Assembly: GCA_002189035.1 (NCBI GenBank)
Contig: CM007991.1
Location: 4,464,001-4,528,000, forward strand
Origin: Utricularia gibba
Taxonomy: Eukaryota; Plantae; Magnoliophyta
Direction of reading: 5' to 3'
Length of the DNA stretch: 64,000 bases
Both the position numbers and the translations under genes were made by a program. Below, in pieces: positions 14,460 to 64,000 of the stretch (within the stretch, counting starts at the first letter, position 1; every line of letters starts with the position of its first letter). A model generated the notes under the pieces. The model ran no database searches and was not told the DNA's origin. It saw only the letters and a program-made list of their open reading frames with translations.

Positions 14460-14479
14460 TTGACTATATTAAAAAAATG

Positions 14480-18480: not shown

Positions 18481-18729
18481 TGAGCTCAAGGATGAAACAA
18501 CGATTAAAAAAATCATACATTTTCATCTTTGTTTGGCATGTCTATGTTTCCCTTGGAAGTAGCTGAATTTTGGGGTTGATCAGAGGTGACCTTTGGCTCT
18601 GCTCCTTTGGATGGTTCTTGTGTTCCTTGCTCATTTTCTTCATTTTTTCCACAAGCTTCATTTTCCTATAATAAGGAAACAATAGATCTTGATAACAAAT
18701 AATACCACACCATATGGAACAAACCTATG

Positions 18730-22780: not shown

Positions 22781-23759
22781 CTTTTTCACCAAAAAAAAAA
22801 AGTTTTCTTCTGGGGTTTCAATATGAGTTAGTAGAAGAAACGTCGAATGCGGAATCGAGGAAGTTAGTTCCTACAGACGTCAATTATATAGAACCCCATC
22901 AACAAGTAAACTAACAATACAAGACGCCCCGGATAAACAATAGATTGGAAAACAGAACCCAGAGGGATTTGGAATACAAAATTATCCCAGTACTCTATGA
23001 TCTCGGGATTGTGGAACCCTAATCACAGATTTGACGAAAAAGAGAAAAAACAAAAGAAAAGCAGTCTGTTTCTTCCGCCGTTGGTGGGCTTCGTTGTCAA
23101 ACTTTTTGACCTCGAGGCCATCGGTAGGGGGGTACCGGTAGGTATGACACGTGGATATGTCGTGTGCTTTAGGACAACATTCCGTGGGCCCGGAGGAAAC
23201 TTACTTTTGTATTTTCTTTTGAATAAATGAATAGCAAATTTCCATTTTCAGCACAATTGGCTCGGTTATCATTATTTTATTGTTTTTCTTATTGCCGTTG
23301 TCCCATTGCAGAAATGATCTGTTGGGTAGTTTCAGCGTGCACGTTACCTCAGTTGATTGGACCATGAAACCTGCAAAAGCCCCAAGACAAGTGGGGTCCG
23401 AACATCGTGAGTAGGTTTTCGAATGGGCTCTTTGGTTTTTCAAATTCAGTGATGCCATCTGAATCTCCTTCCCCTGTTTCTTGTTTTTCTATTTTATAGT
23501 CCCCTAAAGATGCTTCCTTCTGCATCTTTTCTAGTTCAAAACAACAGTTACCAGATGCCTCGGCATCTGTGTTTGTAAGGCATCAGCAGAAATCATGTCG
23601 AAACACAATAAGAGACATATGGTAACTGTACAACACACCGCACGCAGCATAGAAACGGAGTATGAGGGCCTTGATGGTTAAGGGGCAATGACAGCAACAA
23701 TACAAGTTAGAAAGGCAATCCGACAATCAGTACTTGAGGAGGAATGCACTGGCCTCCAT

Positions 23760-24744
23760 CTACTTCCACAGGAAAGGAAATTTTTTATGAGATATCCCTG
23801 AAGACGAGCCTTCCCCACTGTGAAACAAGCCATTATATTGAGAAGAAAAGGAAGTAAAAGGCCTGCCGTCTTGATCAACAGGGGTGAACCGTGCGTCTGT
23901 GTGCGATGATTCCTGGTGAACCGTGCGGTTCAAGCTCAACTCCTCTGTCGCTTCAGGAGCCAATGACAGAAGAGAGAGAGCACGATCAGAGTTGGCGACA
24001 CGATGATTCAGTCCCTCGGAAAAGAATCTCAGTTCAGTAATGGAGGTGTCATGGAAGTGGGGTTCATGAGATGAGAAGTTGAGAAATGTCTCTGGTTTCT
24101 CGATGTAGCGTATTGGCTGGTGCTGATGGAGCCGGCATAGCTCATTTTCAGTTTCCGATTTCACCATTCCGGGGCACGCCGAGTAAGGCACAACCGAAGC
24201 TGGCAACATTTGTGGGCCATCAAATGATAAGATTGTTGCCCCTGATATAGCAGACTGATTGGGGAAGAGGAAGCTGGCGTTCTGGGACAGAGGTTCCGAA
24301 TGCGGCTTCCTTCGCCTGCGGTTGTGGCCATCTAGTCGTTTTCGACAGCTCCGCTTCCCGTCGTCGAACTCCCCTAATGAGTGAAACCTGCAGCAGAAAA
24401 TATAACTGCATGTCACGAAAATCTAAACTGTAAAATGAGCATTCAGGTAGCATCATGAGAGTATTTAAAGTCTAAAGCTACAATTAACACTGCTAGGCTA
24501 AGAGGTTAGGATGAAGGAAACCAATTATATACCTGCTGCATTGCTGACAAAACCGCTGCTCTTGTCCTCTGATAGTAACGCAAGCAGCCTTTGAATGAAC
24601 TTCACATACCTTATGTCGACGGTGATAGTCTCTGCAGAGGCTCAAATCGGCATCACAACCATCTACCAGGCAATGAGCAACTTGGTTGCTTTTGCTGGAG
24701 GCCTTAGCGCGTTTCGACAAACCCGAAGAAGATGATGATTCCAT
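23760..24744 (-). CDS. SPL13: SQUAMOSA promoter-binding-like (SBP-box) transcription factor, SPL13/TGA1-like, about 279 aa
   Basis: Exons 24744-24533 and 24387-23760; complete SBP domain CLVDGC...[11 protein letters not shown]...[10 protein letters not shown]...[18 protein letters not shown]; N-terminus [15 protein letters not shown]; miR156 site. Ortholog assignment is tentative. Confidence 0.93.
23964..23983 (-). promoter_or_regulatory. miR156/157 target site in the SPL CDS
   Basis: GTGCTCTCTCTCTTCTGTCA, within the ALSLLS-coding segment. Confidence 0.95.
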
Positions 24745-28073: not shown

Positions 28074-29285
28074 TGATAACACATAATTGTGAGTGTTTCA
28101 AAATAAGAAAATGATTAGTATTCTTCTACAAAGCTCAGATTTTATTGTTTGTTTCAGTGTTTTTGTGATTAGTAACATTGTTTGCATATTTTATTTCTAA
28201 TCTCAATCTTAAATCTAATCATTTTCTTGAGCATACAGCATATATCAACAATGCAAATCCCAATGATCCTAAAAGTATACAAGGGAAGTAGTATAAAAAG
28301 GGGACAAAAGAGAAGAAATAGAAGCATCAAATCCCAAGAAGAGCAAAAAGAAGATTTTGATACTAATGAAGAGTGAGAAAAATATCTCTTCATTGAACAA
28401 CACGTCACACAAAAATAATTAAGTAGACTTAAATCCTCCATTTGTTAGGTGAATGATTATTAGGTTAGATGAGTTAAATGTAGCAATAATCATGTCATTC
28501 TTTAAAGTTTCAAGTCATTGCATTACCTTATTCTAGTTAGTAGTCTGATGAGGGTACAAATTGAAAGTGGCTAATTGGTCTCTGAAAAGTAGCCAAAGGG
28601 TGTTCTGACACCTGGTGGACAGATCGATAATTGTCAGGACTTGTCAGCGGCGGTTGTTTTACACAGTCTGAAAAGTGGCCGAATTACAGCAAATCAGGCG
28701 GCGATTATTTGAAAAATAGGACCACAGTACAGGCGCAGAAAGCAGCCAACGTCTGTAGAATAGGAGAAATGCTGAAGAGAAAAGGGTTCGACTCTAAGCC
28801 CTCCAACTTGTATCTTTTCTCACCACCTCCATCTAGTAAAGATTTTCTCGACGAGCTCCGACAGCTCCGTGGTTTTTCCGTTTTCCGACGGTTTCCACAT
28901 AAATATCTTCGCCTATCTTCATTTCTACTAAACGAATCGAGCAAAACATCAAAAACGTAATCAGGTGTGGCACATCCAGCTGCACCCATAACCCGAGAAT
29001 TGGCCCTCTCGGATACTGATTCTCGCTCGCAACATAGTCGAATTTGCATGTTATTTCTTATAGTATTTTATTGTAAACCTATCTTACTTTTAGATTAAAC
29101 TAAATCTTTCAATCGTGATAAAAACAACATGCATTAATCTTCACACAACAAACATATAATTCCTTGCGTTTGACCTTGATTCACTATGCTCATATTTTTT
29201 GTATGATTGAATGTTAATTATGTTTATAAATTTATTTGATAGAAGAATTTGTATTTTAACGATATTGTAAAATTTTCATTTATCA
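28074..29285 (+). mobile_element. Old family-A-related LTR interrupted by a family B solo LTR
   Basis: Begins TGATAACAC, ends aacgatatt...tttatCA like family A; TSD not conserved (GGTAT/TGTAC). Confidence 0.5.
28546..29034 (+). mobile_element. Solo LTR, family B, 489 bp
   Basis: TGATGAGG...CGCAACA; perfect TSD TAGTC (28541-28545, 29035-29039). Confidence 0.92.
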
Positions 29286-30539
29286 TGTACTGCTTCATGA
29301 TAACAATCAAATTTTTTTTTCAACATCTGTTTTCTTTTTGCGAAGTTCTCTTTTCTGAATCCTTGCTAACATTTAGCCATGCAGAAACAAGAATAAACTT
29401 ATGTTCCTTTGCCTATCTTTGAGATACTGATTCTCTAGTAGCCATTATCTAAAAAAATGTAGTAAAAATTGATGAAACAAGGAGTGATAATATGCTTGAA
29501 TCAACAGATTGCGTAATTCTAAACACATCATTCCTAATTTAAGCAACAAATTTGATTTTCGGCATTTATTTGAAGCAACAAAATGATTACTGAATAATAA
29601 ACAACTAGGTGCATTGAAAGACATCATGAAACACATCTAAATGTTTAGGAATCATTTATAAATCAACAAAGGATACCATAAAAATGACTGATCAAATGTA
29701 TGCAACTATTTTCTAAACAGATTTAAGAATCATTTATGAATGAAGTTGTTGCATAAATCTAAAACAATGATTTCAAAAGTAATAATTTGATTTCAACTAC
29801 TAAAGTTAATCAATAAAATAAATGGTAAAACAATTAGTTATAACAAAAGATATCATCAAAATAGATTCAAGAATCAGTGAAATACATGAGAAACAAAAAT
29901 GATAGGTTTAGTTGCAAGAAGAAAATCAATAGAATATGGAGATCAAAGTCCTCTAAGAAACTTGGAACAATATTGAAAGGGTAGGATAAAATAAACTCCA
30001 CAAAATCCAACAATCTTATTAAATGCAATAAGAATATGAACTCCCGCCCATCAAACTACAGAATGTGTGTCTTCGAAAACAAAGTGAGACATAGAAGAAA
30101 TTAGACAAAAAAAAAAAAACAAATATGCTCACATCTAGTGCATAACATTGAACAAATATGAATAAATTAAAAGGTATTTACCTATTTGTATGTGTGACGT
30201 AGAAGAACCCAAAAAATAGAGAATTGAAAGACATAAGAACCTATCTTTTATTTTATTGAGTTTCTGAACGGAAACTTGGTTTTTGTGAGGATAGTTTTCG
30301 GAAATCGGAAACCCTTCCTTTATTGATATTGAAAATTTTTATTACTAAAGGTATGCATCACGTAAGTATTTTTGAAAATGAATAAAAATGTTATAACATT
30401 GAAGCTATATATGACATGTATCAAGTTGAATATGGTCCATGTCATAATGTGAATGCTAGTGATTCTACTATTTTATCTTCATTTTCTACTAATGCTCTTG
30501 TTGTACTTCGTAGTGTAGACATCTCTTTTACGCCTTTTT

Positions 30540-30830
30540 CTTATGAAGAATGCATGTTATATAACAATAATCATATAATTGAAGGGAGTAATGATGATTC
30601 TTTTGATATACTAGCTTGGTGGAAAAGCAATTTTATCAATTTTATTATTTTAGATAGAATGGTCAAAGATATTCTTACTCTTTCAACGTCAACCATGCTT
30701 TTGAAAAGCACATTCAGTAAAAGTGGAAGAATAATAACACAGAAAATAACAAAGTGTTCTCCTCCTAATACATTGAAAGGTTGTATGTGCCTAAAAAATT
30801 CGAATGATGCCAAAAAAGGAAGAAAAATTA
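30540..30830 (+). pseudogene. hAT C-terminal dimerisation domain remnant
   Basis: FDILAWWKSN...LDRMVKDILTLSTST...KSTFSKSGRII...NTLKGCMCLKN. Confidence 0.78.
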
Positions 30831-31152
30831 TAAATCAAGTTTTGAATAGAAGTATGAAAATTGAAATCTTAAAAAACATGAGGAATGAAGCTATTCAATG
30901 CAAGTGTTGCATTCTAATTTCAAAAAATAAGAGTTTTATTTTGTATATTTTTATTTTTATTGAATTTGAATTAGTAAGTTGATTCTTAATAGGAGTAAAC
31001 ATTTGATTTGATTTCATTTTATATATTGCACTGTATAATATGGTATTCTTCCAACATAGGTGAGTAAGAAATCGATAAAGAAGTCAATAGTAAATCTGCT
31101 ACACATCCAATAGGCGATTGAAAAGAGATTGTGTCAGACTATGACTACTAGC

Positions 31153-44760: not shown

Positions 44761-44991
44761 GAGAATTTATAGAGAAACTATGATATGTTTGCATAACAAA
44801 AGAATAATTAATCATATTTTTAAAAAATAAACATAGTGATAAATGTTACCTATTGAGCATGGGAGTATGAAAATCTTACACTCTACTACAACCCACAACT
44901 ACATGTTTGATGCGAGATGTTGGTGAGGTGAACCTTGTTTTAATGACAAATGTCATCACCATCTCTCTGCTATACTCAACCATAATACTAT

Positions 44992-45386
44992 TGTTGTAGT
45001 CGAAAATCGGTATCCAGGAGGAGGCCGATTTTTGGGTTATGGGTGTGGCCGGACGCGTCGTACCCAGTTGTGGTTTTGATATTATATTTGGTTCGGTTAA
45101 CAGAAATGAAGATGGACAGGGATTTTTTACGTGGAAATGGAGAACGGAAAAAACCACGGAGTTTGTCGGAGCTCGCCGGAAAATATCTTCACTAAAGGGA
45201 GGTGGGGGAAAAATACAAGTTGGAGAACTTAGAGTCGAATCCCTTCTTCTTCAGGATTTCTATTATTTATAGGTGTGGTTGATCTAGCTGAATTCTGAAT
45301 TCTGTAGGTGTTAGCTGCTTTCTGCACCTGTCGTACATACTATGGTTCTATTTTTATGTAACTGCTGACTGCTCTGTCATTGTCGT
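44992..45386 (-). mobile_element. 3' part of a split family B solo LTR
   Basis: Ends ...CTACAACA followed by ATAGT in element orientation; interrupted by the family A LTR at 45387. Confidence 0.88.
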
Positions 45387-46622
45387 TGATAAACAGAAAA
45401 TTCAGCATATTGTTGCAATAAAAGCAAACTTCCGTATCAAATACATTTATAAGCCATAATCTACACAAAATACAAATTTAGAAAACTTGTATAGTGGATG
45501 TCGGGGTCGATCGCAAGGAGCTTGTGCTTGTCATGTATTTTAACAGATGCAGAATTCAAAGTAACGGTAAGTCTTAGTCTAAGCTCGAACCAACAGTGGC
45601 AAATAAGTTCGTTAAACAAGATCAGTAAACAATATAAGGTCTTAACACTACGGTAACAGGTACTGGTTCTAACTCAGAATAATACTAAGGTGACTTAAGG
45701 GTGTGCAGGTGATATGGTGCCAAAATCCCTAATTTAATCTACCATGTTCCTACACTCACAATTTCAAATAACCTAAGTCTACCTAGGTCATTCATCATAT
45801 TTTCAGTTAAGCTAGTCTCTCATATCATCACCAACGTTGCAATTAGATCTACCCGCATGCAAAGCATATAGAACTAGGTCTACCTGGTTCTACTGGTTCT
45901 ACCTCGGACTAACACCTACTACTCACGTCTTGATTTGTTGGTCTACCTCTAAATCAAGAATCTAAGTTGTAAAGCTACTTGTTCCCCTCCTTAAATCTAT
46001 CCATGGCTTGATAGAAATAAGAGCTAAGAAACAATGATGAATTTTATTAAGATTCCTAGACCTACACTACCATGCTTCATCTTAAGACACCTCTAGGGCT
46101 TTAACTACTCATATTTGGAAGGTAAAAAATAATGACATTAACGTAAAACAACGAAAATGTTAAGGACATCGTGCAGAAGTTGGGTGCAAAAGCCAAAAAA
46201 CATCAACAAACTAAAATAAAGCAGTAAAAGTTCTGGTTTCCCCTTTTGCGACTGTTCCTAGGCCGGAACAGTAGCGTTGAACTGGGTCTTGATCTTCTTC
46301 CTTCGTGCTGGAGGTTCTTCTCCAGAAAAATCGCCTTCCTTTCTCCTTCTCCTTCAGTATTCTTCGTGTTCGAGTTGGGGGAGAAACCCCCTCGTGTGTG
46401 TTCTGAAAAATTCTGGTTCCCCCTTTTGCGACTCTCTCTCCTCCCACTACCAAGGCAAGTACATTCTCTGACAAATCTACTATTTCTAGTCCTGACTTGC
46501 AGACTGCCGTCGTGATAGTGTACTCATTGCCCCCTGCAGCCTGGTGACTTGCACGAAATCAAGATTTTTACTTGATTCTTGGGTTACTGCTAGACTCCAA
46601 AATCGGGTTAGACATGGGGTGA
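45387..46622 (-). mobile_element. 3' part of a family A LTR nested in family B
   Basis: Homologous to 49840-51234; 3' CA end followed by ACGAC; truncated just before the conserved 5' hairpin. Confidence 0.88.
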
Positions 46623-46912
46623 TGGTTGTAATCTACCAAACGAATCGGTGCCTATAAGTATCTTATGAATTCTCCTTTAGATATATGGATATTATCACAC
46701 AATGTGGTATAAGGTAATCATCATTATTATTACACCACATAGTAAATGCCATTATGTCTTAACGAATAGGTAAGGGATCATAACAACAATCCATATTGTT
46801 AATAAATGGAGTGTTTTGTGAAACTTGACGGCTTGCTCCAACTACAATTGCGAAGGTTCATACTTCACCTTCATTGTTTTTGAATAGTTCGAAAGTTGGT
46901 TTTTGAATATTT

Positions 46913-47138
46913 CGCGCGCGCCCTCACGGCACGCCCAAGGGCAGCTGCGCGCTCCCGGTGCTGGCCTGCGGGCTCCCCATTCGACCCGTCTTGAAACACG
47001 GACCGAGGAGTCTGACATGCGTGCGAGTCAACGGGCGAGTAAACCCGTGAGGCACAAGGAAGCTGACTGGCGCGATCCCCCCCCCTCGACGGGGTGGGTG
47101 CAACGCCGACCGACCTCGATCTTCTGAGAAGGGTTCGA

Positions 47139-47182
<44 letters not shown>

Positions 47183-47275
47183 AGCAGGGCGAAGCCAGAG
47201 GAAACTCTGGTGGAGGCCCGCAGTGATACTGACGTGCAAATCGTTCGTCTGACTTGGGTATAGGGGCGAAAGAGT

Positions 47276-47331
<56 letters not shown>

Positions 47332-47385
47332 TCGATGCGCGAGTTCTATCGGGTAAAGCCAATGATTAGAGGCATCGGGGGCGCA
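46913..47385 (+). rRNA. 26S (LSU) rDNA fragment, 473 bp, orphan pseudogene
   Basis: Conserved ACCCGTCTTGAAACACGGACC, GACCCGAAAGATGGTGAACTATGCC, CGAAGTTTCCCTCAGGATAGC; abrupt ends in AT-rich DNA; no TSD seen. Confidence 0.97.
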
Positions 47386-47467
47386 CCAAAATTTCATTCA
47401 GAGAAAAATGATAGCACTTGGTTAGTGAAAAACCAGTGTAGCATAAATAAACTAATCAAGTTTTTAC

Positions 47468-47878
47468 CTGCAAGAGAAGAATAACTAGAAGGTACCTCCT
47501 GCAGATGAACATTTTGGATTTTGGATGATTTCTCGTCTAGTGATGATAATGCTGAATTGCTAGGTTGATTTCTGTTCATAGAAGAAAATGGAACGGTTGA
47601 TTCAGCTGAGCGAGAGTGTTGAGAAGCCTGAAGCTGGCCTTCGCTCATCTCCGTTTGTGGTCATGTTGGATGTTGTTGTTAGTTCGATGGTGGACCTACC
47701 GGCTTGTGCATTTCAGAATGTTGAGGATCATGGGGCTGAGAATAATGGTCTCCCTGGTTATTCTGATCTTGATTTCCCCCAGAAGGTAGCAAATGTGAAA
47801 AAGGGGGCTGACTCTCTGCAGTTGCTGCAGCAGCCCAAGATCTTGCTTTTGCTTCCCAGTCTTCCACATTATTGTTCG
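47468..47878 (-). pseudogene. PNISR-like gene, exon 2 (inverted block)
   Basis: AG/GT-bounded 411-nt exon: NNNVEDWEAKARSWAAA...VHLQEVPSSYSSLAG with in-frame TAA and TGA. Family identity rests on my recollection of plant homologues. Confidence 0.72.
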
Positions 47879-48128
47879 CTGTACGCAAAGAAAAATTAAG
47901 AAAGCAGTGACATGTGAAAGAAGAAACACCTCGTGCATATATTGAACAGAGTAAGTTTTTGGGTGCCAGAAAATTAGACATCAAGTTGTGGGAGGGAAAA
48001 AAACAAGCATATAATGAAAATGTGCATTAAAAACAAGTTCCGCAAAAAATAAAAAACTAGGAAAAAATAAGGTGTACAACTTAAATATAATTTCAAACTC
48101 TCATGAGAATATAAAATTACAAACTAAC

Positions 48129-48260
48129 TTGTGTTTTGTGGATGACTCCATCTTGCAGTCCCCGAATCCTACACGACCCAGTGTACAAAAATATGGAGAA
48201 GGTGCAGAATACCGTAAGGCAGCAAAAATCCATCTTCAGCGTACATCATCACCCAAATGA
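48129..48260 (-). pseudogene. Probable 3' end of exon 1 of the same pseudogene
   Basis: *DSGTARWSHPQNT followed by donor gttagt in a phase compatible with the next exon; weak similarity. Confidence 0.35.
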
Positions 48261-48396
48261 TGATCTAACTCTAACTTGAAAGATGTTCTATTATCTCATT
48301 AATACTTTTTGTTTTATGGAGGTTTTCTTAATATAACTTTTTTACTATAAAATGGTGGCACAATTTTTTGCATCATGGATCAAAAAATTTCATAGT

Positions 48397-48547
48397 TGAT
48401 GGGGTATAAATCGGACCCAGTTAGTCGTCTACTGAAAAGTAGACAAAAGGTGCTTTGACGGGATAACGCAGGCCGACATACCGATACCCATCAATATCTA
48501 TCAACAACAACCGTTTTGCACAATTTGAAAAGTAGCCGAATTACGGC
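48397..48547 (+). mobile_element. 5' part of the split family B solo LTR
   Basis: TGATGGGGTATAAATCGG... preceded by ATAGT (48392-48396) and ending in ACGGC. Confidence 0.88.
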
Positions 48548-48677
48548 TGATAGCATACAAATTTTCATGTTTTAGGATATGAAAAATTATAAATTTGTAA
48601 TTATGTTTAAGTGTTAATTTTATAGTTTTAAGTATTTTTATTTGGTTAGGGAAAGTATGATTTTTGGTGTATTAGTA
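48548..48677 (+). mobile_element. 5' 130 bp of the split family A LTR
   Basis: TGATAGCATACAAATTTTC... aligns to the family A start TGATAACACACGAATTTTC; stops where the hairpin should begin. Confidence 0.8.
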
Positions 48678-48979
48678 GATTGGTGCGTAAATAGGTGCAG
48701 GCGCAGGTGCAGGTTACCAGGAAAAATATGAACCTATACGCAAACTAGGATCTGATACAATCATACTTGTACCATGATTGAAACGAGGCGAGAAATTCAA
48801 GGGTTGATTGCTCAGCTCTACCACAGAATCTGCTTGACCACCTAGTATTTGTGGGTTCTCCACCCACCCAGGTCCGCCATTGGCAAACTGCTGATACTGA
48901 GTGTCATGATGCGTATGAGAAGAAACTGGCATAGAGGAAGAGCCATTGATCAGTTTTCCCTCACCTGTCTCTCACGTTC
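48678..48979 (-). pseudogene. PNISR-like gene, exon 3 (inverted, truncated)
   Basis: Acceptor ttttatttcag; ELSNQPLNFSPRFNH...SW*PAPAPAPIYAPI, comparable to DQPLDFAPRF...SWTPP...VYPPI in homologues as I recall them. Confidence 0.65.
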
Positions 48980-49839
48980 CTGAAATAAAAATACAGACTC
49001 AGGATTCCTCTCCCAATCCCATCAGGGTTATTTTTTTTTTTCTCAGTATAAAACTGATTTTGTTTTTTTGGTGTTGGAAGTATGCTCAAAAACCATGTAA
49101 TCTAGCATCCCATAATTGTTGTTCTCTCTTTTACGGCAATGTCCAGAATTATATGTTTGGATAATGTATTTATAAGTTGTTAAAAATATTCGACAGATTC
49201 TCTTATAATATGTATATTCGAATGGTTCACAGTTTGAATACTTTGATTGGGCATCATAGTTGGATTAATTGTCACATTTGTTTATTTACTGTGTTGATAA
49301 AGTGTTTATCAAGATACAGTAGGCAGTGGGTCGAATGCTGCTTGATATGAGATGTTAGAATAAACATGTGGGGGCTCATGAGATGAGCTGACCGAACATG
49401 TGACGCTGAATAACATATGCATGGTATTTTACATATGTCAACACAATGTTATTCAGATTGCTTTATGCAAATCCTTCGACTTGAGGTTTCATTGTGTCTT
49501 ATATATTATTGCCTTAGATTTGTTACTATTTAGACTTGTTGAAATATACAAGTCAGCGATAGTGATGGTCTAAATTGATAGTATATGAAGATCTCTGAAT
49601 AACTAAGATAGGATTCATTACTTCGGGTAAACGGAGATGAGACTTCAGATTTCCTGATTGTTTCGTCGGGTAAATTCCTGGCCAGGTTGTCGAGATATTG
49701 GAATGAGATTCCAAATTTTCGTTTTGCCATCGAAACGTGAGTTCAGGATAATCTTGATGATCTAGATGAAATGGAATTTGACTATCCATGATTCCATTCT
49801 AGATCGAAGTCTCCAATGAAGGGATATTCATAAGGATAG

Positions 49840-51234
49840 TGATAACACACGAATTTTCCTATTATTAGAGTAAGAAAATTATACTTTTGAATCATGTTTT
49901 AAGTGTTTATCTTATAGTTTTTAGTATTTTCACCAAATTTTAGTACATAATGTGATTTTATGTGTTAATGGGCTAAATCAAAAGATTTAGCCCATCGCAT
50001 GTTATTAACATTTTTCTAATCCAGCAGCAAAGCTCTAAAATTAGGGAGGATACATGAATTTCGTGCATGTGGAGATTTGGAAGAAGGGGCACAAGACATA
50101 AGAAGGAGACATGATTAATATTCAGACGCCTACAGTCTGCAGGTTCAGGCCAGGAACAGTACGAATGTCAGAAACAGTGGATTGATTTTGAAAAATGGAA
50201 AAAATATGTGAAGATATTTTTGGAGAGAAGAGAAGAAAGAGAGGAGAGCAGACCCAAGGAGGGGCTTCTCCCCCAACACGACGAGTACTGAACCAGGAGA
50301 GGAGAAGAAGATCTTCATCCTCAAGAACAGCATAAGAGCCCAGTCCAGCGCTACTGTTCCGGCTAGGGAACAGTAGCAGACGTAAATCAAAACTCTTATT
50401 GCTTTATTTTCGTTTATTGATGTTTTCAGTTTCTACAACCAACTCTTTCACGATATTCTTGACATTTTCGTTGCTTTATGTTAATGTTATCATGTTTTAC
50501 CTTCAAAGCATGAGTAGCTAAACCCTAGGAGTGACTTGAGGTGAAGCATGATGGTGGGGGTCTAAGAATCTTAATAAAATTTACCATTCTTCCTTAGTTC
50601 TTGTTTCTATCAAACCATGAGTAGACCTAAGAAGGGGAACCAGTAGTTTCACAACTTAGATGCTTGATTTAGAGGTAGACCAATAAATCAAGACGTGAGC
50701 AATAGGTGTTAGTCCGGGGTGGAACCAATAGAACCGGGTAGACCTAGTTCTATATGCTTTGCATGCGAGTAGACCTAATTGCAATGTTGGTGACGATATG
50801 GAGGACTAGCTTAGTCGAAAACATGGTGAATGATCTGGGTAGACTTAGGTTATTTGAAGTTGTGAATGTGGGAACATGGTAAATTAAATTAGGGATTTTG
50901 ACACTACACCACCTGCAGACCCTTAAGACACCTTAGTATTATTCTAAGTTAGAACCAGTACCTGTTACCTTAGCGTTAAGACCTAATATTGTTTACTTAT
51001 CTTGTTTATCGAACTTGTTTACCACTGTTGGTCCGAGCTTAGACTAAGACTTCCTGTTATCTCGAATTATGCATTTACTAAAACACTTAGCAAGCACAAG
51101 CTCTTCGTGATCGACCCCGACATCCACTATACAAGTTTTCCAAATTTGTATTTTGTGTAGATTAGGGATTATAAATTTATTTGATACGGATTTTCTATTT
51201 TTATTGCAACGATATTAGGAATTTCCGTTTATCA
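49840..51234 (+). mobile_element. Solo LTR, family A (Athila-like), 1395 bp
   Basis: TGATAAC...TTTATCA; perfect TSD GATAG (49835-49839, 51235-51239); 12-bp-arm hairpin at 49968-49995. Confidence 0.93.
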
Positions 51235-51499
51235 GATAGCAATCAAGGTTCATTATTGAATATCGGATTCAGTTTTAATTGGGTGAATACAATATGCAAT
51301 ACTAGGCATTTCTTGTATTTTATGAGAGACACGATATGTTGGGACAATATCGTTATTAGAGAAATGAGATTTCTCGCCTCTCATTGCCGATTAAAAATGA
51401 ACCTAGTCAGTCACACAAACAAAAAATTAGAAGTTGTCCGAGACGCTTGTGATTCGGGTTTTGATAGACTCTAGCATGTCTTTAATCTTGGATCATAGG

Positions 51500-51915
51500 T
51501 TGGTTAAATATTGATTATATGGGCTCAGGCCCATATAACCAAGGCCCAAAATAATATGGGCCAATGATATGGGCCACAAGTCCTAGGCCCATATTCCTAA
51601 GGTCCAAGCCCATATTTATTAGCCCGTTTTGGAAAGCTTGCCGCATTAAAATGCATGCCATCGCTTGGCTATAAATAGGAGGCAATTGGTCCACTTTCAT
51701 AGGTTTTTGGATTTCTTCTGGGAAGAGGTGTTCAACCTCCGAAAGAGGAAAATCACTTTAGGAAGAAACGAGACCGGTGAATAGCAATACGAAGAAGAGA
51801 ACTCGACTCTGGTTTCGAGTTTGGTAATTTCCTCCACTTATTCCACGTGTTTCTTCTATGTTGATAGTCAGTGTTAATATGAGATATTAGAATTGACTTT
51901 ACTGTGTTTTCCCAA
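51500..51915 (+). mobile_element. Probable Copia-type LTR remnant or promoter
   Basis: Cluster of TGGGCY/GGCCCA motifs, ctataaatag TATA, ends ttttcccaata; no TSD. Confidence 0.4.
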
Positions 51916-52222
51916 TATGCCGATTCAAGAGTTGAATCAAGTATTGGTGCAAATATGAGATATTGGTATCAGATGGATGTTTATTCCATGAGATGGTTTA
52001 AACATATTTTGGGCAAAATGTATGTGATACATTTGTTGGTTTAACCTAGTCGGATTTATTTCTAGTTCGTGTGGACGAGCTAGAGCCATCGTTGTTTCGG
52101 TGCTGTAGCGATATGAGATATCACTGGTTACAAGAAGGGAAATTTTTGTTTTTCCCACCTTCCGCTGCGCGTAACCCAACATTTGGTTCGTCATATAACT
52201 TGATTTCCTTCTCACATCTTAG

Positions 52223-53023
52223 GGTGATCCAATAATGGTTCCTCCACCTTCTGGACCTTCAGCTCCAATTTTTCCTGCAGGACCTGGCTTCCAGTCAGCT
52301 TTACCAATGATAGGTTTCACGCTTGGTGCTGCCTCTTCTGTTCTGCCACATCTTACATCTTTTTCGGGTGATGCATATGGCGTTTCCGAGAGACCAAAAA
52401 AAGTTAGTTATGAATTATTTCCAGGTTTGAATCTGTTCAAATCCTTAATGCTAAAACATATGGTGTGACTGCGGGCTCCAGTGCCTAATTGGCTTAGGGA
52501 AGAAATTATTAAAAAGAAAGCAAGTCTTGCGACTTCTGCTCGAGATATTGACAAGATTGACTCGCCATCCCTTGAGGTCGATGGTGATGATGCATATTCT
52601 AGGAGTAGAGATCAAGCAGATAGCAAGAGCATCGATTCTTCAAGATCCGTTGAAGATGGGGATGATGAGGTGAATTCCCTCCATCCGTGTGACTAATTCT
52701 ATGTTCCCTTCGTACAACCTGTTGCAAATATCTGCTGTTCTTCTGTACTTTTGTTCAAGTTGACTGCTTGTTGGCGTTGCTGATTATGTGCTCATCACTA
52801 TTTGTTTTTTAGGTAGCAACGGAGGCCATTATGACGGCTGCTATGAGTAAGAAAATAAAACGCATTCTAACTGAAGTTCTTTTGAAGGTTGCACCTGCGT
52901 CAATGATAATCAACTATGAGTATTCTTGGAAATGCATTAACATTATTTTCAGGCAGTTCACAGACGAACTGTTTGAGGAAATAGCCTCTAAGGTTTTGGG
53001 AGAAGACGACATCTCCTCTGAAG
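52223..53023 (+). pseudogene. PNISR-like gene, exons 4-7 (+ strand), truncated
   Basis: Exons 52223-52402, 52475-52669 (acceptor mutated to GG), 52813-52887, 52957-53023: FSGDAYGVSERPKK/APVPNWLREEIIKKK...DQADSKSIDSSRS/KRILTEVLLK/FTDELFEEIASKVL. The LTEVLLKxTDE motif resembles PNISR LTEILLDVTDE. No downstream exons found. Confidence 0.78.
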
Positions 53024-56000
53024 GTTACTTAACAACACCCCCTCGTCGCCTGAAATTCTTGTTGACACGGTTTTAAACTTGTCAAGGGATGGTGTTGTCT
53101 AACATACTGAAAACGGTAAGTTCATTTTTTTACACTTTGTTTAGGTTAACTTATTCATTATTATATCCAAAATAAGGACTTCAATCATCTATTATTGCAC
53201 TTGTTGATGATAAAGATGAACAAAGTGAAGGCCGAAGTCTATGAAAATATTATTTAATAAATATTTTATTCTATCACTTTGGTGTTATTGTAATATTTTA
53301 TGGTTTTTTTAGTTAAAAATATGATTTTAATAAATAGTAAGTTTGAAATGCTAACCTTTTTGTATGTTGTAGAGAATAAAAATGGTAAAAAGTCAAATAA
53401 AAAATACACCTTTTGGGAGTTGAAAAAAGAAAATGTTAATTATTCTAGAAATTGTTACATGGGATGGATTTCCCATCGTGGAGTTGATACCCGTCATGAT
53501 AGGACATGATTTTTAAATTTTAAATTTATTATGGATTTGAAGTTTGAATTTGTGGATCAGACATATGTTTGGTGAAACCCTAATGTAATCCTACTTATTG
53601 ACATCCCGACTTGTACAATATTAATAATAAATACAATATAGATATATAACTCATATCTTTATGTCATTCAATCTTTTAAATAAAAGATATATCCTATGAT
53701 TCGTTTGAATCACAAGATCCACCGCAGTTGCATATTTGTGTTATATACTTTTTTTAAAAAAAAAATTGACACTACAATCGCATAAATATGATATGTGAAA
53801 GTTATTTTGAAAATCAAATTTGCAAATTTGGGGATGATCACCTAATTTCTTACAAAAAATTTGCAAACCATATTATACATTAATTAAATCTAAATTCAAA
53901 TAAGTTTAACTTGACTACAAAACAAACTTTTTGAAAATTTTTAAGTATCATTTATAGATGGCTAAATAATGTAAAGTTGCAATAACTCCCATCTATTAAG
54001 AGTTTTGATTTGAAATGTTGCACAACGCTCGTTTAGATAAGGTTTTGGTAAATTAGAAGCAATTTCATGAAAACTTACTTTATTGTTAAAGAAATTTTCT
54101 TTTTCTACATAAGATGAATTGAGAAAAGAGAACTATAGCAAAATATAAGAGGGTTACCCTAAACAACTTTTGAATTTCTTTATAAAAGTGAATCTCCTTA
54201 AAAAACAGATTTTCCTTCCAAAGCGAGCTAATACGTGATTTTTTAACTTGTCCCTAGTTCCTTTCAGTATGACTTGATTTTTCTTGTGTGTAATCCTTGT
54301 GAAGCAATTGGGCCATTCATTATATGATACGTTTGTTGGGCAGTGGAGTTTATATGCCCATTTATTGTTTTTTGGTTGCATATAAGTATCATGTGTGAAA
54401 AAGAAAAGGGAGTTTACCTTACAAAAGGTGACCTCTTGTGTTCCTCTCCGATGGGTGGTCGACCTCACATGCTTAGTGAAGGTTTCTCTTCTTGGATCAT
54501 GTTCTTCGTCTCATGCTAAGGAACTGGCGATAAGAACAATGTTAATTAAATTTTAATAAATTGGTTTTGAGTGGTGGTAACATTTCTTTGATCCATGAGA
54601 CAAGATCAAAGGGTTTATTGTCATAGGATGTGGCTTACAATATTTTATTGTTTGTAAAAATCTACTTAATTAATTCATTTCTAACATTTGTTTGTTGATC
54701 GTGTTGTAGACTTTGAGTTTCGATAGTACTCGTGAGATAAACTATGAACAAACGTGAGTGACCACAGGTTGGAAGGAAGCGCAGATTGGAGATTCAAATC
54801 GGAACCCAAGGAGCAATTTCGAGAAAGGAAAAACAACACTTTTAGTGTTCTTGTTACAGTGTTTTATATGTCGTGTGTGCAAGGATAAATTCGTAAATTC
54901 CTATATAGTGGCATAACGTGTCTCTAATAATTAACCTCCAGGATCCTCTTGATCGCTTTTTTCATCCAATAATCTTAACAAACTACGTTAAGTTTTATAT
55001 CATTTTCTTTTCTTTTTTTATGCAAACCTGTTTTAGGAATATTGCGTAGCTTTAATTGTCTTTATCTGGTACAACAAGTGAGGGACATATTGTATGCGGT
55101 ATATGCTTCTTGATCAACGTGCCTCCTGTATTTTTCTTATTGTGAGTTACTTACTCTACTAGAATCGCTGTTCAAATGGATGAAAATCATTCGAAAAGTT
55201 TCTCCACCAACTATTAAATCATCTTCAAATGGTCTTTTATATACAAAACCACATTTATCTACAAATAGTGATTACTGGAATGTCACACTTCTTTCAATGA
55301 GATTTTCCTTTATATGATTATATTGTTTTGTATGAAAGTTTAGTTGATGATAATATGTTTAGTGCTTCTAGAATGTTATACAAATTCATGCTATTGAAAT
55401 GACTGCTATATGTTTAAATATTTTGAATTATGCTTTCACTCCACTTGGATTTAAGAAAGTTTTTGAATGAAAAACGGCTTTTGAAATATGAAAAAAAAAA
55501 TAGAGCTAATTTATAAACAGATAGAGTTTGAAAAAAAAAAAAACAAATGCAATATATTAATGCAGGAGTTTGTGACTTTTGATGTAGATGAAATTATTTT
55601 TAAATTTTAAGAAAGATTTACTCTTTTTTTTTCAAATTGTTCTGATCTCTATCAAATGACAAATATTTACAAATTTTGAAAATATTTGGATGATTCTTGG
55701 ATTGGTAGAATAACAACTCTGTCGAAATCTATCAAAGAGACTAGATAGCGTCTTGAACCAAACTATTCAGTGATTCTAACATGGTTCACACCTTAGATTG
55801 ACTCAATGAGTTCAAGTAACATCTCTAACCAACCTCCACAATGAATCTAATATGGCTCACACACCAATTGAACCAAAGCAATGCCTCTTACCAAACTTCT
55901 TCGTGAATCCAGTGTGGTTAATCTCAAATATTAAGGAAAACTCTCCTTTTAAGAGGCCCTCCTCATCAAACATTAGAAAAACAAAACCCCTTCATGGAGT

Positions 56001-57543
56001 CTTTTTTTTTTTTTTTTTTTTTACTACCTCTTTGTAGGGCTCCCAAATTTATCTCTAGGATGATCTCCTCATAAGGTTCCCAAATTTTTACCTAGGGTAA
56101 AGGCATAGATAATTTTAGGGATAACCTCCTCATTAGGCTTCCAAATTCATTATATATATATAAATAATGCTATGACATACATATCTATTTCATGAAATAA
56201 GTTTTATCTTTTTTTTATAATGCAGATTAATTTTTTCTATTTATTTGTAAGTTTGTCATAACCTTATTCAATTATTAAAAAATTTATAAAAAAATTAAAA
56301 TTCCAATAACATATATTGTGAGAAAATAGATGTAGAAGTCAGCTATATCGATCATTAAGGCACAATTCAACTAGACAATACAAGCTTTAAAACATGTGAT
56401 ACCTAATGATTTTTTTACATAAAAAACATTGATCTTTATCATTGGTCACATGTTTTTTTTGACATATTTTCTAAATTTGCATTATTGACCAACAACAATT
56501 AAGAATCATTAAATATCACATTTAAAGGAAGAGCGCCACTTGGAATTGATCAAGATGTTAAATAAAATCAATGATGTACTTTTATCTTATTTGTTAATTA
56601 ACCGAAAGAAACAAAAAAGTGGATATGCCCTACAATTTAATAATATTGTGAGGAAGGTAGAAATGGTTTTTTGGATGATTGTGATAGAAGAAATTACAGA
56701 TAGATGTACATAAAAAAGAAATTGATAATGAAACTTACAACATACCAATGTGATTACCATGATTGTGATAAAGAAAATTACATTTAATGTTTTGTTTCTT
56801 TATATTAATATAAAATCATAATATTTTGAAAATTTTGAATTGATGGAATATCCCTTGCAAACACGTATGTCAACCCTTTCTTCATCAATTTGAAGTACTT
56901 TTCGACTATACTAGATAATACGACATGAAAGAGAAATCCAAAAAAAATACATAATAGAGATATTTTTCACTTGTCAAGCAAACAACATTAACTGAAAGTT
57001 GATGATTTTTCAATGTTGTCTCCTATTTGAATATGATGTATACTTGACGTCCATCAAAGAACCAACTTAAAAAGAAACATGTTATATCTGTAGTGTGCAA
57101 AAATTGCAATAAAATTGATCATGACAACAGGACATTCTAGACTATTTAATGTGGAGGCCTTTGAAAATGCACAAAATCAAGAACCGACTATTACAACAAC
57201 ACATGACTTAATAGCAATATGATTAAATTTTCCAAGTAGCCGAAGTGCTGGTGAAAGTTTAATAGCGTCACTTTAATAATTTGAATTTTAAATTTTCATC
57301 ATGAAAATATTCATATAAATACTATTTATAATATAAAAAATTCAAAAAAAAATAGCAATACTTCATTTAATTTCGAATTTTAACAAAATAAAGTTTTAAT
57401 ATATTTATATGTAAAAGTGAATCTAATGCTACTTTGTACATTTGTTACATTTTAAATTTAAGGTATGATTAAAAAAAATCCAATGTTACTTATCAAGTCA
57501 TTGTTTCTTTTAATCAATTTATACTACTTTAGTTATTTGTATT

Positions 57544-58854
57544 TGTTAAGTATCATTTTTAGTTAATTATTAGGTATTATTATGTGTTAATTTTGTATGA
57601 AGTCGTCCAAATTAGGAGTCTTATTATTAAGTATTTGATTTTTACTAGAAAATTCCTATTTTCCCATTTTGTGTATATTTTATGGCTTTTTTTCTCACAC
57701 TTTGACCGAGACATGTCATGAGATTGTCATAGAGTGTTGCAAGAGTATTGCAGGTGATCAGACTCTGAGTTTTCGTGCCTTGTACGCGAGTTGGAATGAT
57801 TGTGGGCGGAAGACTTACACTAGTCAAGGCGTTTGACTTACGGCATGTCAGAATTTGCGCAATGATTATGCGCAAACTTGCACCCAAAGAAAGTTTGGTG
57901 GCGCACACAAGACAGAAGGAATGATGGGAAGGGAACCCAAAGGAGTTAATACACGTGAGAAGTCATATAAAAACCACTTGGAGCACTTAGTTTTGGACTT
58001 TTGTCATTTCCTTTCTAGACTTAGAACTTTTAGGTTCTTCCTGCCTTCCAAGGAGGAAGAATACTTAGCTTTCAATTTCCTTTCTGTTTTCATGACCCTT
58101 TCGGACTAAAAACCTTGAGTTTCTGGGAAGTAGATGAAGTTTCCTTCCAAGTCTTGAGCAATACACTCGGTTCTTCGCTGAATTGATTTCGAATTTTGCA
58201 TACTTCCACGCGCTTTGTTGCAATATTTCTGTAACGACTCCTAGTCAAGGTCCATGAGTAGCAGGCCACTTCTCGCAGATTTTGGTGAAGATCAAGGTGA
58301 AGAGCACCAACTCCAACCCTGCTGGTTCGAGGGAAGTAGTGGATTGTTTGTGGCCTAGGTACCACAACAGTGGATAGGTTGTGACCTCGGACCTACCACT
58401 GGCTATTGGCAACAACTGGGCACACGCGCGCAATTCGGTTTTGAAGGCAATCGAAGTCAATCCTCTTGTCTTCCTAATCGTCCAAGGGGGAATCATATGA
58501 GGCTATTACTATGCCTCCTTGTCAATCAGAGTGTAAGGGAAAGTAGGCTATTCCTTGCTCCTATAACTAGCTATTCGAAAGAAATCAGTGAAAACCGAGG
58601 CAAGGACGGACAAAGGAAGGAGATGGAATCTTATTCCCAGGAACTGCGTACCGTAGTCAAGGTCCATTATTTAGGTTGCAATTTTTATTTCTGCATCTTA
58701 CAAACCCTCTTTTACAAAACCGTGGCATTTTGTAGAAGTTCTTTACAAAACGCTTTTCACGAAAAACAACTCCCTGAGATCGATACTCGTAGTACGCTTT
58801 CTAGTGTTTTACGTTTTAAATATTTAAAATTTTTTGAGAAAACGACACGCAATA
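57544..58854 (+). mobile_element. Solo LTR, family C, 1311 bp
   Basis: TGTTAAG...CGCAATA (terminal CA mutated to TA); perfect TSD GTATT (57539-57543, 58855-58859). Confidence 0.9.
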
Positions 58855-59013
58855 GTATTGGTCCAAATCTATAAAACTAAATACTCTCCATATATACTTT
58901 TTTGTGATTTTATCTCACAAATCTTTCTCATACATTATTTTGAATTCAATGTCTTTCTAAGAGTTTTGATGTCTAAAGTTGTTTTAGCCGTACGAGTTTT
59001 CTATGATGGTAAT

Positions 59014-60360
59014 TGATAAACGGAAATTCCTAGTGTCGTTGCAAAAATAGAAAATTCATTATCAAATAAATTTATAATCCCTAATCCTCACAAAATACAA
59101 ATTAAACACAAAGTGTACTGTGGAATTTGGGGTCGATCACAAGGAGCTTGTACTTGTCATGTATTTCAGCAGATGCAGAGTTCAATGTAATGATAGTCTT
59201 AGTTTAAGCTCAGACCAACAGTGGTAAACAAGTTCGGTAAACAAGATCAGTAAACAATTATCAGGTCTTAACGCTAAGGTAACAGGTGCTAGTTTTCACT
59301 TAGAATAATACTAAGGTGCCTTAAAGATCTACAGGTGGTGTGATGCCAAAATTCCTAATTTAATTTACCATGTTCCTACACTCACAACTTCAAATATCCT
59401 AAGTCTACCCAAGTCATTCATCACATTTTCGGCTAAGCTAGTCCACTATATCATCACCAACCTTGCAATTAGGTCTACCCGCATGCAAAACATATAGGAC
59501 TAGGTCTACCCGGTTTTACTGGTTCTACCCCGAACTAACACCTACTGCTCCCGTCTTGATTTGTTGGTCTACCTCTAAATCAAACATCTAAATTGTGAAG
59601 CTACTTGTTTCCCTCCTTAGGTCTATCCATGGTTTGATAGAAACAAGAGCTAAGAAAACAATGGTCAATTTTATTAAGACTTCTAGACCCACACCACCCT
59701 GCTTCACCTTAAGGCACTCCTAAGGTTTAGATACTCATGCTTTGAAGGTAAAATGGAATAGCGTTAACATAAAACAACGAAAATGTTGAGGACATCGTGC
59801 AGAAGTTGATTGTAGAAGCTAAAAACATAAACAAACGAAAATAAAGCAGTAAAGTTTCTTGATTACGTCTGCCACTGTTCACAGGCCGGAACAGTGGCAC
59901 TGAACTGGGTCTTGATCTTCTTCCTTCAAGCTAGAGGTTCTTCTCCAGAAAAATCTCTTTTCTTCCTCCTTCTCCTTCTATCTCTTCGTGTTCAAGTTTG
60001 GTTGGGGGAGAAACCCCTCGTGTGTGTTCTCTCAAAATTCTGGGTCGTCCCTTCTTTTTTTTGCGACTCTCTCTCCTCATCTTTCTCTTGCCTCCCACTG
60101 CCCAAGGCAAGTACATTCTCTGACAGATCTGCTGCTCTAGGCCCTCACTTGCAGACTGTCGCCATGACAGTGTACTCATTGCCCCCTGCGCCCTAGTGAC
60201 TTGCACGAAATCCAGATTTTTCCTTGATTATTGGGTTGCTGCTAGACTCCAAAATCGAGTTAGACATGGGGTGAGCTAAATCCTTTGATTTAGCCCACTA
60301 ATTACACTAAAATAAGGATATGTTTTTTTATAACATATACAATATTATTTATATACATCA
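59014..60360 (-). mobile_element. Family A LTR, third copy
   Basis: 3' end well defined; hairpin retained near 60271-60298; 5' end uncertain and TSD not matched. Confidence 0.8.
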
Positions 60361-61804: not shown

Positions 61805-64000
61805 GTGGCTATGATGGCATCTGGTAGGGGGCCTCCGATATTTGATGGTTCTGAGTATGGAAGTTGGGTTAAAAAGATGCGTAGCTACCTTCGAGTCAAA
61901 AAGATTTGGGATGTTGTTGAAAGGGAGATACCGGCTATTCTAGTAACAAGCAAATCTACATCAGAACAACAAGAGAAAGCTGAGTATCTTCAACAAAGAA
62001 AAGATGAAGCAATGGATGCCTTATACCAAGCCATTTCTGAACATCTATTTGATGATATTGCAGAGTGTCAATCAGCGAAAGAAATATGGGATACTCTCAA
62101 ATCCCATTATGATAGTGATGTCAAACTCAGAGAGATAATATGCAAAAACAAGCTGGAGGACTTTGAGAGGAACAAAATGTTAGACAATAAAACCATACAA
62201 GTCTATTATGAATGTACTGCGAAGCTTGTGAAGGAGATTCGAGGATTGGGGGAAAAACTTGAAGATAAAAAGGTGATTAGCAAGGCAATCTCGAGCCTAC
62301 CTGCAAAATTCGAGCCAAAGTTATGTCCACTTGAGACAGAAAGAAAAATCCTTGACATTATTGAAGGAAAGCTCCATCAGTTGTATCCTGAATATCATGT
62401 TACACCAAAGCCAACATTTAGAGAATTCATGATTGAGTTGCAATCAGAAAAGAGATTGGAACTCAGAGATGGTTATGAGGTTGAGAAAACTTATGGTGAA
62501 GCTGCTCTCCTCACCAAAATGCAGAATATATATAAATTCATGTGCAACTAACAATGTCAAGGATGTCAAGTCAACAGACATCAAACAATCACCAACGTCA
62601 ATCCCAACTTCAATCATGGGTAATCAGAAGTGTAGGCATTGTGATAAATCCAACCACAAGAGTGAAGATTGTTGGACTTTAAGCACAAATGCTTGCAAGC
62701 ATTGCAACAAACAGAATCACAGGAGTGAGTTTTGTTGGTGGAAGCCTCATGCTTTGTGCATGAAATGCAATCAAAGAGGCCATCTTGACAAGGTATGTGG
62801 AATGTTAAATCCAATCAAAGTTAATCATAACAAGAAAACTACTTCCAATGATGAAAAATCACATGCATCATTTACCTACTTTGAAGACGAGCCAGAAATA
62901 TCTTTTGAAGATCCTTTTGATTATGAGTGTGCTCTAGTGACACTAGTCTCAGATGCTAAAGGCTGGTACTTGGATTCTGGTGCCTTCTATCATGTATGTT
63001 GTGATACAAGATCATTTTTCCAGCTTGAAAAGATTGGGAAGGAGGGAAGCATGTGCACGGGTGAAAATATTGGCATTGTGGGCAAAGGAAGCATTTTACT
63101 TATGCTAAAAGAAGGAACTGTTCAAGTTGATGATGTTTATTATTCACCAAACCTTAAATAGAACCTATTGAGCTTTGGCCAATTGAGCAGACAAGGTTTT
63201 GACATTGAGCTGATGAAGGATGCTGGTGTTATAACCACTGAAGTTAAAGTTGCTAATCCAAAAACGAAAATTGAATTCCATGCTATGTTGACCCCACCTA
63301 CAACCTCTACCAAATTATGGTCAGTGATAAAAAAAAGTTGTATTTTCTCACTTTAGGATCAAAGCAGCCTTTGGCACAAACGTTTTGGGTACTATAGCTT
63401 CAACAATCAGAAAATATTGTAGAAGAATAAGGAAGTACTGGAATTGAAAGACATCAAGTTTGCTGGTGCCATATGTGAAGTGTGCCATCAAGGTAAAACA
63501 GTGTAGAAAGCCATTTTATTCTAGTGATTCAATAGCAAAGGAGAAATTAGAACTTTTGCATACAGATGTTTGTAGACCATTTAAGGATTGTTCATTGGGG
63601 GAGGGGGGAGTAGATATTTTGTTACATTCATTGATGATTATTCACGTTATTGTTGGGTTTACTTTCTTAAAAGCAAGTCAGAAGTTCCTCATATCTTTCG
63701 AAAATTCAAAGTGATGACTGAGAATCAGAGTGGATGCTCCTTAAAGATGATTAGGTCAGACAATGGAGGTGAACTCTACAATAATAGCATGAGAATGTTT
63801 TGTGAAAATAAGGGAATCATGCATCAATTCATAGTACTATATTCTTCACAACAAAATGGTATATGTGAAAGGATAAACAGAACAATTCTTGATATGTCAA
63901 GATGCCTATTGTTTGAGAAAGATCTTCTGTTAGTGTATGTGTTCTAGAGACAATCAACTCATTGGCAAATCTTATCTTTTGATATTTACTTTGAATTGTG
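61805..64000 (+). pseudogene. Ty1/Copia gag-protease-integrase, frameshifted, runs off the window
   Basis: PPIFDGSEYGSWVKKMRSYL (gag), CCHC knuckles, WYLDSGA (protease), [64 protein letters not shown] (integrase). Confidence 0.92.

Follow-up and report, generated by a model that had tools for sequence, protein, structure and literature searches.

The stretch analysed here is 64,000 nt of plant DNA from Utricularia gibba (contig CM007991.1, positions 4,464,001 to 4,528,000 of the forward strand), hereafter the window, which has a G+C content of about 33%, contains many remnants of long terminal repeats (LTRs), and includes no Ns. It holds the decayed remnant of exons 2–7 of an intron-containing PNISR-like gene that was originally oriented on the plus strand. 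Exons 2 and 3 of this remnant are now found on the minus strand, with exon 3 on the wrong side of exon 2, and exons 4–7 are on the plus strand. The analyses described below resolve this arrangement into two adjoining segments, Q (46623–48677, 2055 bp) and R (48678–49006, 329 bp), each inverted in place. A single three-break end-joining event in a gene ridden with transposable elements is probably the best explanation for their present order.

The gene family was identified with the exon at 52481–52669, which in a library-wide phmmer search matched plant proteins of about 900–1030 aa. The species represented include Striga hermonthica (P0013), Withania somnifera (P0008), Dorcoceras hygrometricum (P0014), Cornus florida (P0012, labelled at its source as 'nucleolar protein NET1'), and Rumex salicifolius. 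When the window exons were scanned one by one against Pfam, no match was obtained at E≤10. The full-length homologues score 19.7–26.1 bits (E 1e-5 to 1e-3) against the PNISR family (PF15996), just below the gathering score of 27 bits that defines membership, and the similarity falls on the part of the proteins encoded by exons 5–7. With scores this close under the cut-off, 'PNISR-like' is a fair label that stops short of formal family membership. With the orthologue group represented by the Striga, Withania, and Dorcoceras proteins, the locus shares collinearity and common intron positions, for exons 2–7 only.

Intact relatives provide the reference for the gene structure. In the Striga gene (L001), exon 2 encodes residues 127–262 and exon 3 residues ~258–376, intron 2 is 470 nt and intron 3 is 77 nt long, and exons 4–7 follow closely spaced. 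Of the relatives found, the closest is represented by a group of Logan contigs (L003–L009, SRR288101xx; protein P0058), whose exon 5 shares 66% protein identity and 74% nucleotide identity with the window; a word search with exon 5 returned no other copy above 66% identity. The contig L006 of this group shows the same gene structure as Striga, with an intron 3 of ~85 nt. A comparison of introns between the window and this closest relative aligned nothing, the exons themselves being only 74% identical.

Exons were placed by tblastn of full-length plant homologues against the window and, in addition, by a profile hidden Markov model (HMM) of 19 full-length homologues compared with six-frame pieces of the window. 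The two sets of placements agree, with HMM E-values of 1e-7 to 1e-25. Homologue residues ~127–260 fall at 47876–47466 on the minus strand, ~255–365 at 48986–48681 on the minus strand, ~380–502 at 52229–52669 on the plus strand, and ~507–551 at 52822–53022 on the plus strand, and each exon block is single-copy within the 64 kb as judged by the HMM in all six frames. Exon 2 (47878–47468, minus strand) matches HMM positions 120–282, in two parts (120–195 and 218–282), with tblastn E-values down to 2e-17, and is bounded by an AG acceptor and a GT donor. It is flanked by the 3′ part of intron 1 (47879–48396, minus strand), which has no homologue or HMM match, and by the donor-side 845 nt of intron 2 (46623–47467, minus strand, now inverted), with the donor at 47467–66. 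Exon 3 (48979–48678, minus strand; HMM positions 291–354; tblastn E 2e-8) is cut at its 3′ end, and its 5′ side adjoins the last 27 nt of intron 2 (48980–49006, minus strand), which comprise a polypyrimidine tract and an AG acceptor and read, as the reverse complement across the splice site, aatcctgagtctgtatttttatttcag followed by GAACG. On the plus strand, intron 3 (49027–52222) leads to exon 4 (52223–52402; HMM positions 410–477; tblastn E 5e-29 jointly with exon 5), whose reading frame is intact, and then to exon 5 (52475–52669; HMM positions 476–541, E 7e-25), which is open, exon 6 (52813–52887; HMM positions 544–567 and a tblastn match), and exon 7 (52957–53023; HMM positions 568–588), the last that can be recognised.

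Two of the introns carry additional sequence. Intron 2 holds a fragment of about 480 nt of 25S (large-subunit) rRNA at ~46905–47385 on the plus strand, which includes part of a GC-rich expansion segment, lies 282 nt from the left edge of segment Q (junction J1, below), and matches Rfam RF02543 (LSU_rRNA_eukarya) at 47012–47297 with 264 bits. Intron 3 has grown from ~80 nt in the relatives to 3.2 kb through the insertion of a solo LTR (B2, below) and other sequence. In that intron, a block at 51244–52222 contains GGCCCATAT-type short repeats (51511–51610), a TATA-like box at 51672, and at 51966 a sequence resembling a primer-binding site, TGGTATCAGATGG, with ends TGTTGGG...CCCAACA at 51338 and 52180; tried as an LTR, 51338–52180 lacked both a target-site duplication and a second copy within the window.

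The remnant is decayed as well as incomplete. In-frame stop codons interrupt exon 2 at 47679–81 and 47661–63 and exon 3 at 48972–74 and 48714–16, and the acceptor of exon 5 reads GG (52473–74) where both the Striga gene and L006 have AG; exons 4–7 are still open. HMM positions 1–119, corresponding to exon 1 (~126 aa), have no match anywhere in the window, nor does anything beyond position 588 (~400 aa after exon 7), and a search for exon 8 at 53–58 kb by tblastx and tblastn found none. Weak proline-rich tblastn matches at 38.0–38.6 kb and 43.7–43.9 kb were considered as candidates for exon 1 and rejected after their translations were read; they were judged to be chance matches or the opposite strand of something else, and the HMM gave no exon-1 signal. 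Since neither exon 1 nor any sequence beyond exon 7 is detected in the window, the locus is a partial remnant and not a whole scrambled gene. It would have been non-functional before the rearrangement or have been killed by it. A preliminary description of the locus, made from the sequence alone, had recognised a scrambled PNISR-like gene with exon 3 out of order on the minus strand relative to exon 2 and exons 4–7 on the plus strand, together with the stop codons and the AG-to-GG acceptor change; tblastn and the HMM bear out this exon arrangement and the decay stands, with the qualification that the gene is represented by exons 2–7. What had been taken for exon 1, at 48260–48130, has no homologue or HMM match and belongs to the 3′ part of intron 1.

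Repeat families, found by self-comparison of the window with blastn, supply further landmarks. Family A is an LTR of ~530 nt with copies at 13928–14460 and 28545–29035; family B is an LTR of ~1.4 kb with ends TGATAAAC...TATCA. At the locus, a solo LTR of family A is split into two parts in opposite orientation: a 3′ half (h2) at 44992–45376 on the minus strand (74% identical to 14079–14459, E 1e-56) and a 5′ part of 151 nt (h1) at 48397–48547 on the plus strand (73.5% identical to 13929–14079, E 3e-19). Likewise, a family-B LTR, designated B1, is divided into a body at 45387–46622 on the plus strand, which starts with TGATAAAC and is 83–85% identical to the copies B3 (over 59000–60274) and B2 (over 51234–50334), and a tail of ~130 nt at 48675–48548 on the minus strand, which ends in GCTATCA and is 80.6% identical to the B2 tail over 93 nt (E 4e-17). 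B2 itself is a complete solo LTR in intron 3 (49841–51238, minus strand; TGATAAAC...GTTATCA) with GATAG on both sides. B3 lies further downstream (59016–60313, plus strand); its similarity to family B ends just past a palindrome described below, the last ~115 nt of the family being replaced by unrelated sequence, such that this copy is shortened or diverged.

Reversal of segment Q restores both split elements. When 46623–48677 was flipped in a script, B1 regained its full length inside a solo LTR A that was likewise full-length, and both restored elements are collinear with their sister copies. LTR A then has termini TGATGG...ACAACA and a perfect target-site duplication, seen at present as ATAGT at 48393–48397 and its reverse complement ACTAT at 44987–44991. 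B1 had inserted within LTR A, and its flanks, ACGGC and ACGAC, are identical in four of five positions. LTR A, B1, and B2 thus all show the TG...CA termini and 5-bp target-site duplication expected of solo LTRs. Since a single flip restores B1, LTR A, and the target duplication, these provide three independent markers of the inversion, and the nested transposon scars prove that segment Q is inverted in place.

The inversion of Q does not account for exon 3. With Q undone, exon 2 lies on the plus strand and exon 3 remains on the minus strand, which means that a second flipped piece is needed. Exon 3 breaks off at 48678, 27 nt short of its natural end in both Striga and L006. In four homologues (P0013, P0039, P0008, and the L006 protein), 22 residues separate a conserved Trp from the end of exon 3; only 13 of these 22 are present in the window, which indicates that the exon is truly cut. 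The remainder was sought by aligning the last 36 nt of the relatives' exon 3 plus donor with 48980–52222. For Striga, the best plus-strand match is at 49007–49025, with 16 of 19 nt identical and a score of 26, compared with a 95th percentile of 25 in shuffled sequences (about p 0.04). The distance from the match to the other end of exon 3 is 27 nt, and the match continues the cut end in frame (...YAPI followed by PLPIPS); the 20 nt at 49007–49026, CCTCTCCCAATCCCATCAGG, encode PLPIPS as the missing 3′ end of exon 3 and are followed by a GT donor at 49027–28 and a T-run, as in the closest relative found, where CAG is followed by GTTTTATTTT. An earlier candidate for the exon-3 remainder, 52155–52185 ('PPSAARNPTF', just upstream of exon 4), was dropped because 49007–49026 has a higher score, continues the reading frame, and is followed by a proper donor.

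Reversal of 48678–49006 was evaluated in the same manner. With this piece flipped back, the exon-3 alignment crosses the junction and gains 1–7 bits in 19 of 20 homologues, the restored exon order is collinear with the homologues, and the restored intron 2 measures 872 nt, of which about 390 nt remain once the ribosomal DNA (rDNA) piece is subtracted, compared with 470 nt in Striga. A third junction, J3, is therefore placed at 49006/49007, a placement that becomes convincing only when frame, position, and donor are taken together, and segment R is inverted in place directly beside Q. The junctions delimiting the two segments are J1 (46622/46623), where the B1 body is joined to the interior of intron 2; J2 (48675–48678), where the start of the B1 tail is joined to the cut end of exon 3, both on the minus strand; and J3, where the end of intron 2 is joined to the exon-3 remainder. 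Several expectations set out in the preliminary description are realised in this map. It had noted the fusion of the cut end of exon 3 to the cut end of an LTR at about 48678, and the LTR concerned is the one at 45387–46622, whose tail adjoins an exon that is 27 nt short; it had argued that one inversion is insufficient and that three breaks are needed, a topology for which all three junctions can now be placed with nearly single-base precision; it had expected the third of these between 49000 and 52200, and J3 falls where the model requires it; and the exon order that it had assumed from plant homologues is the one obtained upon restoration.

Comparison with the restored partner sequences shows that the junctions are blunt, with 0–2 nt of filler, 0–1 nt of microhomology, and no duplication; the 'TA' at 48676–77 in J2 is either ambiguous in origin or filler. 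Given the minimal microhomology and the lack of duplication, classical end joining fits better than template switching. Inverted repeats were not found at two breakpoints, as a recombination-type inversion would have them: the inverted B1/B2 pair does not sit at the breakpoints, B2 being intact with its own duplication, and the only match close to J1 and J2, of 7 nt (AATCTAC/GTAGATT), is compatible with chance and is not counted as evidence.

B1 lacks ~24 nt at its break. In B2 and B3, the same stretch is a near-perfect palindrome, GGGCTAAATC-NNNN-GATTTAGCCC, at 49976–49999 and 60275–60294, respectively. Folded as DNA, the B2 palindrome forms a 12-bp stem (−12.4 kcal/mol, z −6.9) and the predicted energy for that of B3 is −7.8 kcal/mol (z −4.0). 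Such folding is not possible for either of the B1 cut ends. The coincidence of position suggests that a hairpin-prone palindrome may have triggered the break in B1.

Based on these data, a straightforward course of events can be proposed. Before the rearrangement, the solo LTR A would have entered intron 1, B1 would have entered LTR A, and the 25S rDNA fragment would have entered intron 2. Three double-strand breaks within 2.4 kb would then have occurred: break (a) within B1, at the place of the ~24-nt palindrome; break (b) within intron 2, at a distance of 27 nt from the start of exon 3; and break (c) within exon 3, whose natural end, judging by the homologues, would lie 27 nt further on. These breaks would release Q, consisting of the B1 tail, part of LTR A, the end of intron 1, exon 2, and most of intron 2, and R, consisting of the end of intron 2 and most of exon 3. 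End joining would have re-ligated both fragments inverted and in their original places, creating J1, J2, and J3 and converting the order P-Q′-R′-T into the present P-Q-R-T. The segment map, the orientations, and the three junctions are read directly from the locus, as is the fact that almost nothing was lost or gained; the three breaks would have been simultaneous, and intron 2 would have been continuous across break (b).

Some points weigh against this account. The simultaneity of three breaks cannot be read from one haplotype, and, with introns of the nearest available relatives that are not alignable, the continuity of intron 2 across break (b) is inferred. J3 depends on 20 nt whose nucleotide match, taken by itself, is marginal. 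Finally, seven open reading frames of the window that lie on or near the junctions were looked for in a same-species Logan assembly, and none is on record there.

Among the alternatives, Q and R could have been inverted one after the other, in either order, with the later inversion making use of the junction left by the earlier one. Such sequential inversions would give the same final order, and no result of the analysis is at odds with them. They would, however, require re-use of the breakpoint at J2 to within 0–2 nt, and the intron-2 site offers no repeat or other fragile feature that would favour such re-use; two events are also less parsimonious than one. Sequential inversions are considered unlikely.

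A second alternative involves extrachromosomal circular DNA (eccDNA), in which a 2.4-kb segment from B1 to exon 3 would have been excised as a circle, cut open again within intron 2, and put back in inverted orientation at the gap that it had left. J2 is indeed a circle-type head-to-tail junction, connecting the cut end of exon 3 to the start of the B1 tail in the same orientation, and the order of the segments is a circular permutation, Q R being the inverse of a rotation of Q′ R′. Circularly permuted re-insertions in human DNA that are attributed to eccDNA are on record (Takahashi and Innan 2020; PMC7188851). In these eccDNA-mediated duplications, the source copy persists and its permuted counterpart is found at another place, whereas here every exon is single-copy and the segment occupies its own original site. 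Moreover, the circle needs an extra ligation and a chromosomal gap that stays open until recapture at the exact site. It is important to note that the product of the circle and that of plain three-break misjoining are identical, as are the two adjacent inversions sharing a junction and the circularly permuted inverted re-insertion between which the preliminary description had wavered; the two routes differ only in whether the intron-2 break comes before or after ligation of J2. With the same three breaks and the same three junctions in both, the sequence cannot favour a circle over plain misjoining. Thus, the permuted order and the head-to-tail junction put forward for the eccDNA reading hold, but nothing points specifically to a DNA circle, and the rearrangement is of an ordinary kind. 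The circle is regarded as decidedly improbable, and the same low credence attaches to its most specific form, a natural re-integration of plant eccDNA in situ that leaves no duplication, involves a second cut in intron 2, 27 nt short of exon 3, and was started by the palindrome.

A third possibility, that the assembler flipped two pieces, draws on the location of J1 and J2 within a repeated LTR family and on the failure to find the junction-proximal open reading frames in the sole same-species short-read assembly examined. Against it, the window contains no gaps marked by Ns, R is only 329 bp long with unique sequence on both sides, the LTR copies are merely 80–85% alike, and the junctions are clean with a specific loss of 24 nt. 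In addition, an independent contig (L002, Logan SRR2033663) that corresponds to window positions 52354–53601 agrees at 99.92% (one mismatch in 1249 nt) where it is present, a near-identity that marks it as the same species sequenced independently; it reaches no junction. Mis-assembly is accordingly rated very unlikely. The least likely proposal is separate capture of the blocks by a transposon (Pack-MULE, Helitron, or similar), or their origin from different paralogues. In its favour, the gene is present only as a fragment, and B1 (plus strand) and B2 (minus strand) first resembled 0.9-kb terminal inverted repeats around exons 2–3, the rDNA, and an LTR piece. This view of the pair as the ends of a Pack-type element was rejected, given that B2 is complete as a solo LTR and has a perfect GATAG duplication of its own and that B1 becomes a normal nested LTR once Q is undone. 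The blocks are also free of overlap, join to the base and in frame within exon 3, and preserve the intact gene's splice sites and phases. Their boundaries lie within an LTR, within an intron, and within an exon, in place of termini and a duplication around unrelated fragments. A single three-break end-joining event hence remains the preferred reading of the locus.

Other features are scattered through the window. An SBP-domain (SPL-type) gene fragment at 17695–24416 on the minus strand, in which the open reading frame 23760–24416 matches Pfam PF03110, lies between the family-A copies at 13928–14460 and 28545–29035; these copies are therefore not the two ends of one retrotransposon. An open reading frame with a hAT-family dimerisation domain (PF05699) at 30416–30982 on the plus strand marks a DNA-transposon remnant, and open reading frames for a Copia-type gag and pol beta-barrel (PF14223, PF22936) occupy 61805–63161 on the plus strand. 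A 1.33-kb inverted repeat pair (1730–3059 and 57540–58867) is 88% identical, its members lying 54 kb apart.

More generally, the locus represents a tidy, fully resolved, balanced three-break rearrangement, with nested transposons and an in-frame exon cut as built-in markers. It shows that a gene remnant in transposon-rich plant DNA can look scrambled without any capture mechanism. It has no bearing on gene function, the gene being dead and incomplete, and no new mechanism is shown.

The closest known counterpart is small-scale chromothripsis-like shuffling, in which several simultaneous double-strand breaks are repaired by non-homologous end joining. Like such balanced complex rearrangements, the locus shows clustered breaks, fragments re-ligated in the wrong orientation, and blunt junctions that carry 0–2 nt of filler, with next to no sequence lost or gained. 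It differs from them in that only three breaks fall within 2.4 kb and both fragments keep their position, and in that it is a fixed, old germline state in a transposon-rich plant region and not a fresh somatic event. With the human eccDNA cases (PMC7188851), it shares an order that is a circular permutation of the source and a head-to-tail junction; unlike them, it concerns a single copy inverted at its own site, for which no circle is needed.

Compared with plant PNISR-like proteins, the window copy aligns over exons 2–7 in matching order, shares their intron positions and phases, and retains the conserved motifs EDWxAKAxxW, PNWLREEIIKKK, and TEVLLK-TDELFEEIA. In contrast to these proteins, it is without exon 1 and the long Arg/Ser-rich C-terminal exon, carries four stops and a broken acceptor, and reaches only 40–66% identity in its best exons. 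As markers of rearrangement, the nested LTRs A, B1, and B2 are conventional, with TG...CA ends and 5-bp duplications. Their sole unusual point is the coincidence of the family-B palindrome with the break in B1, which offers a concrete, testable link between an LTR palindrome and a chromosome break.

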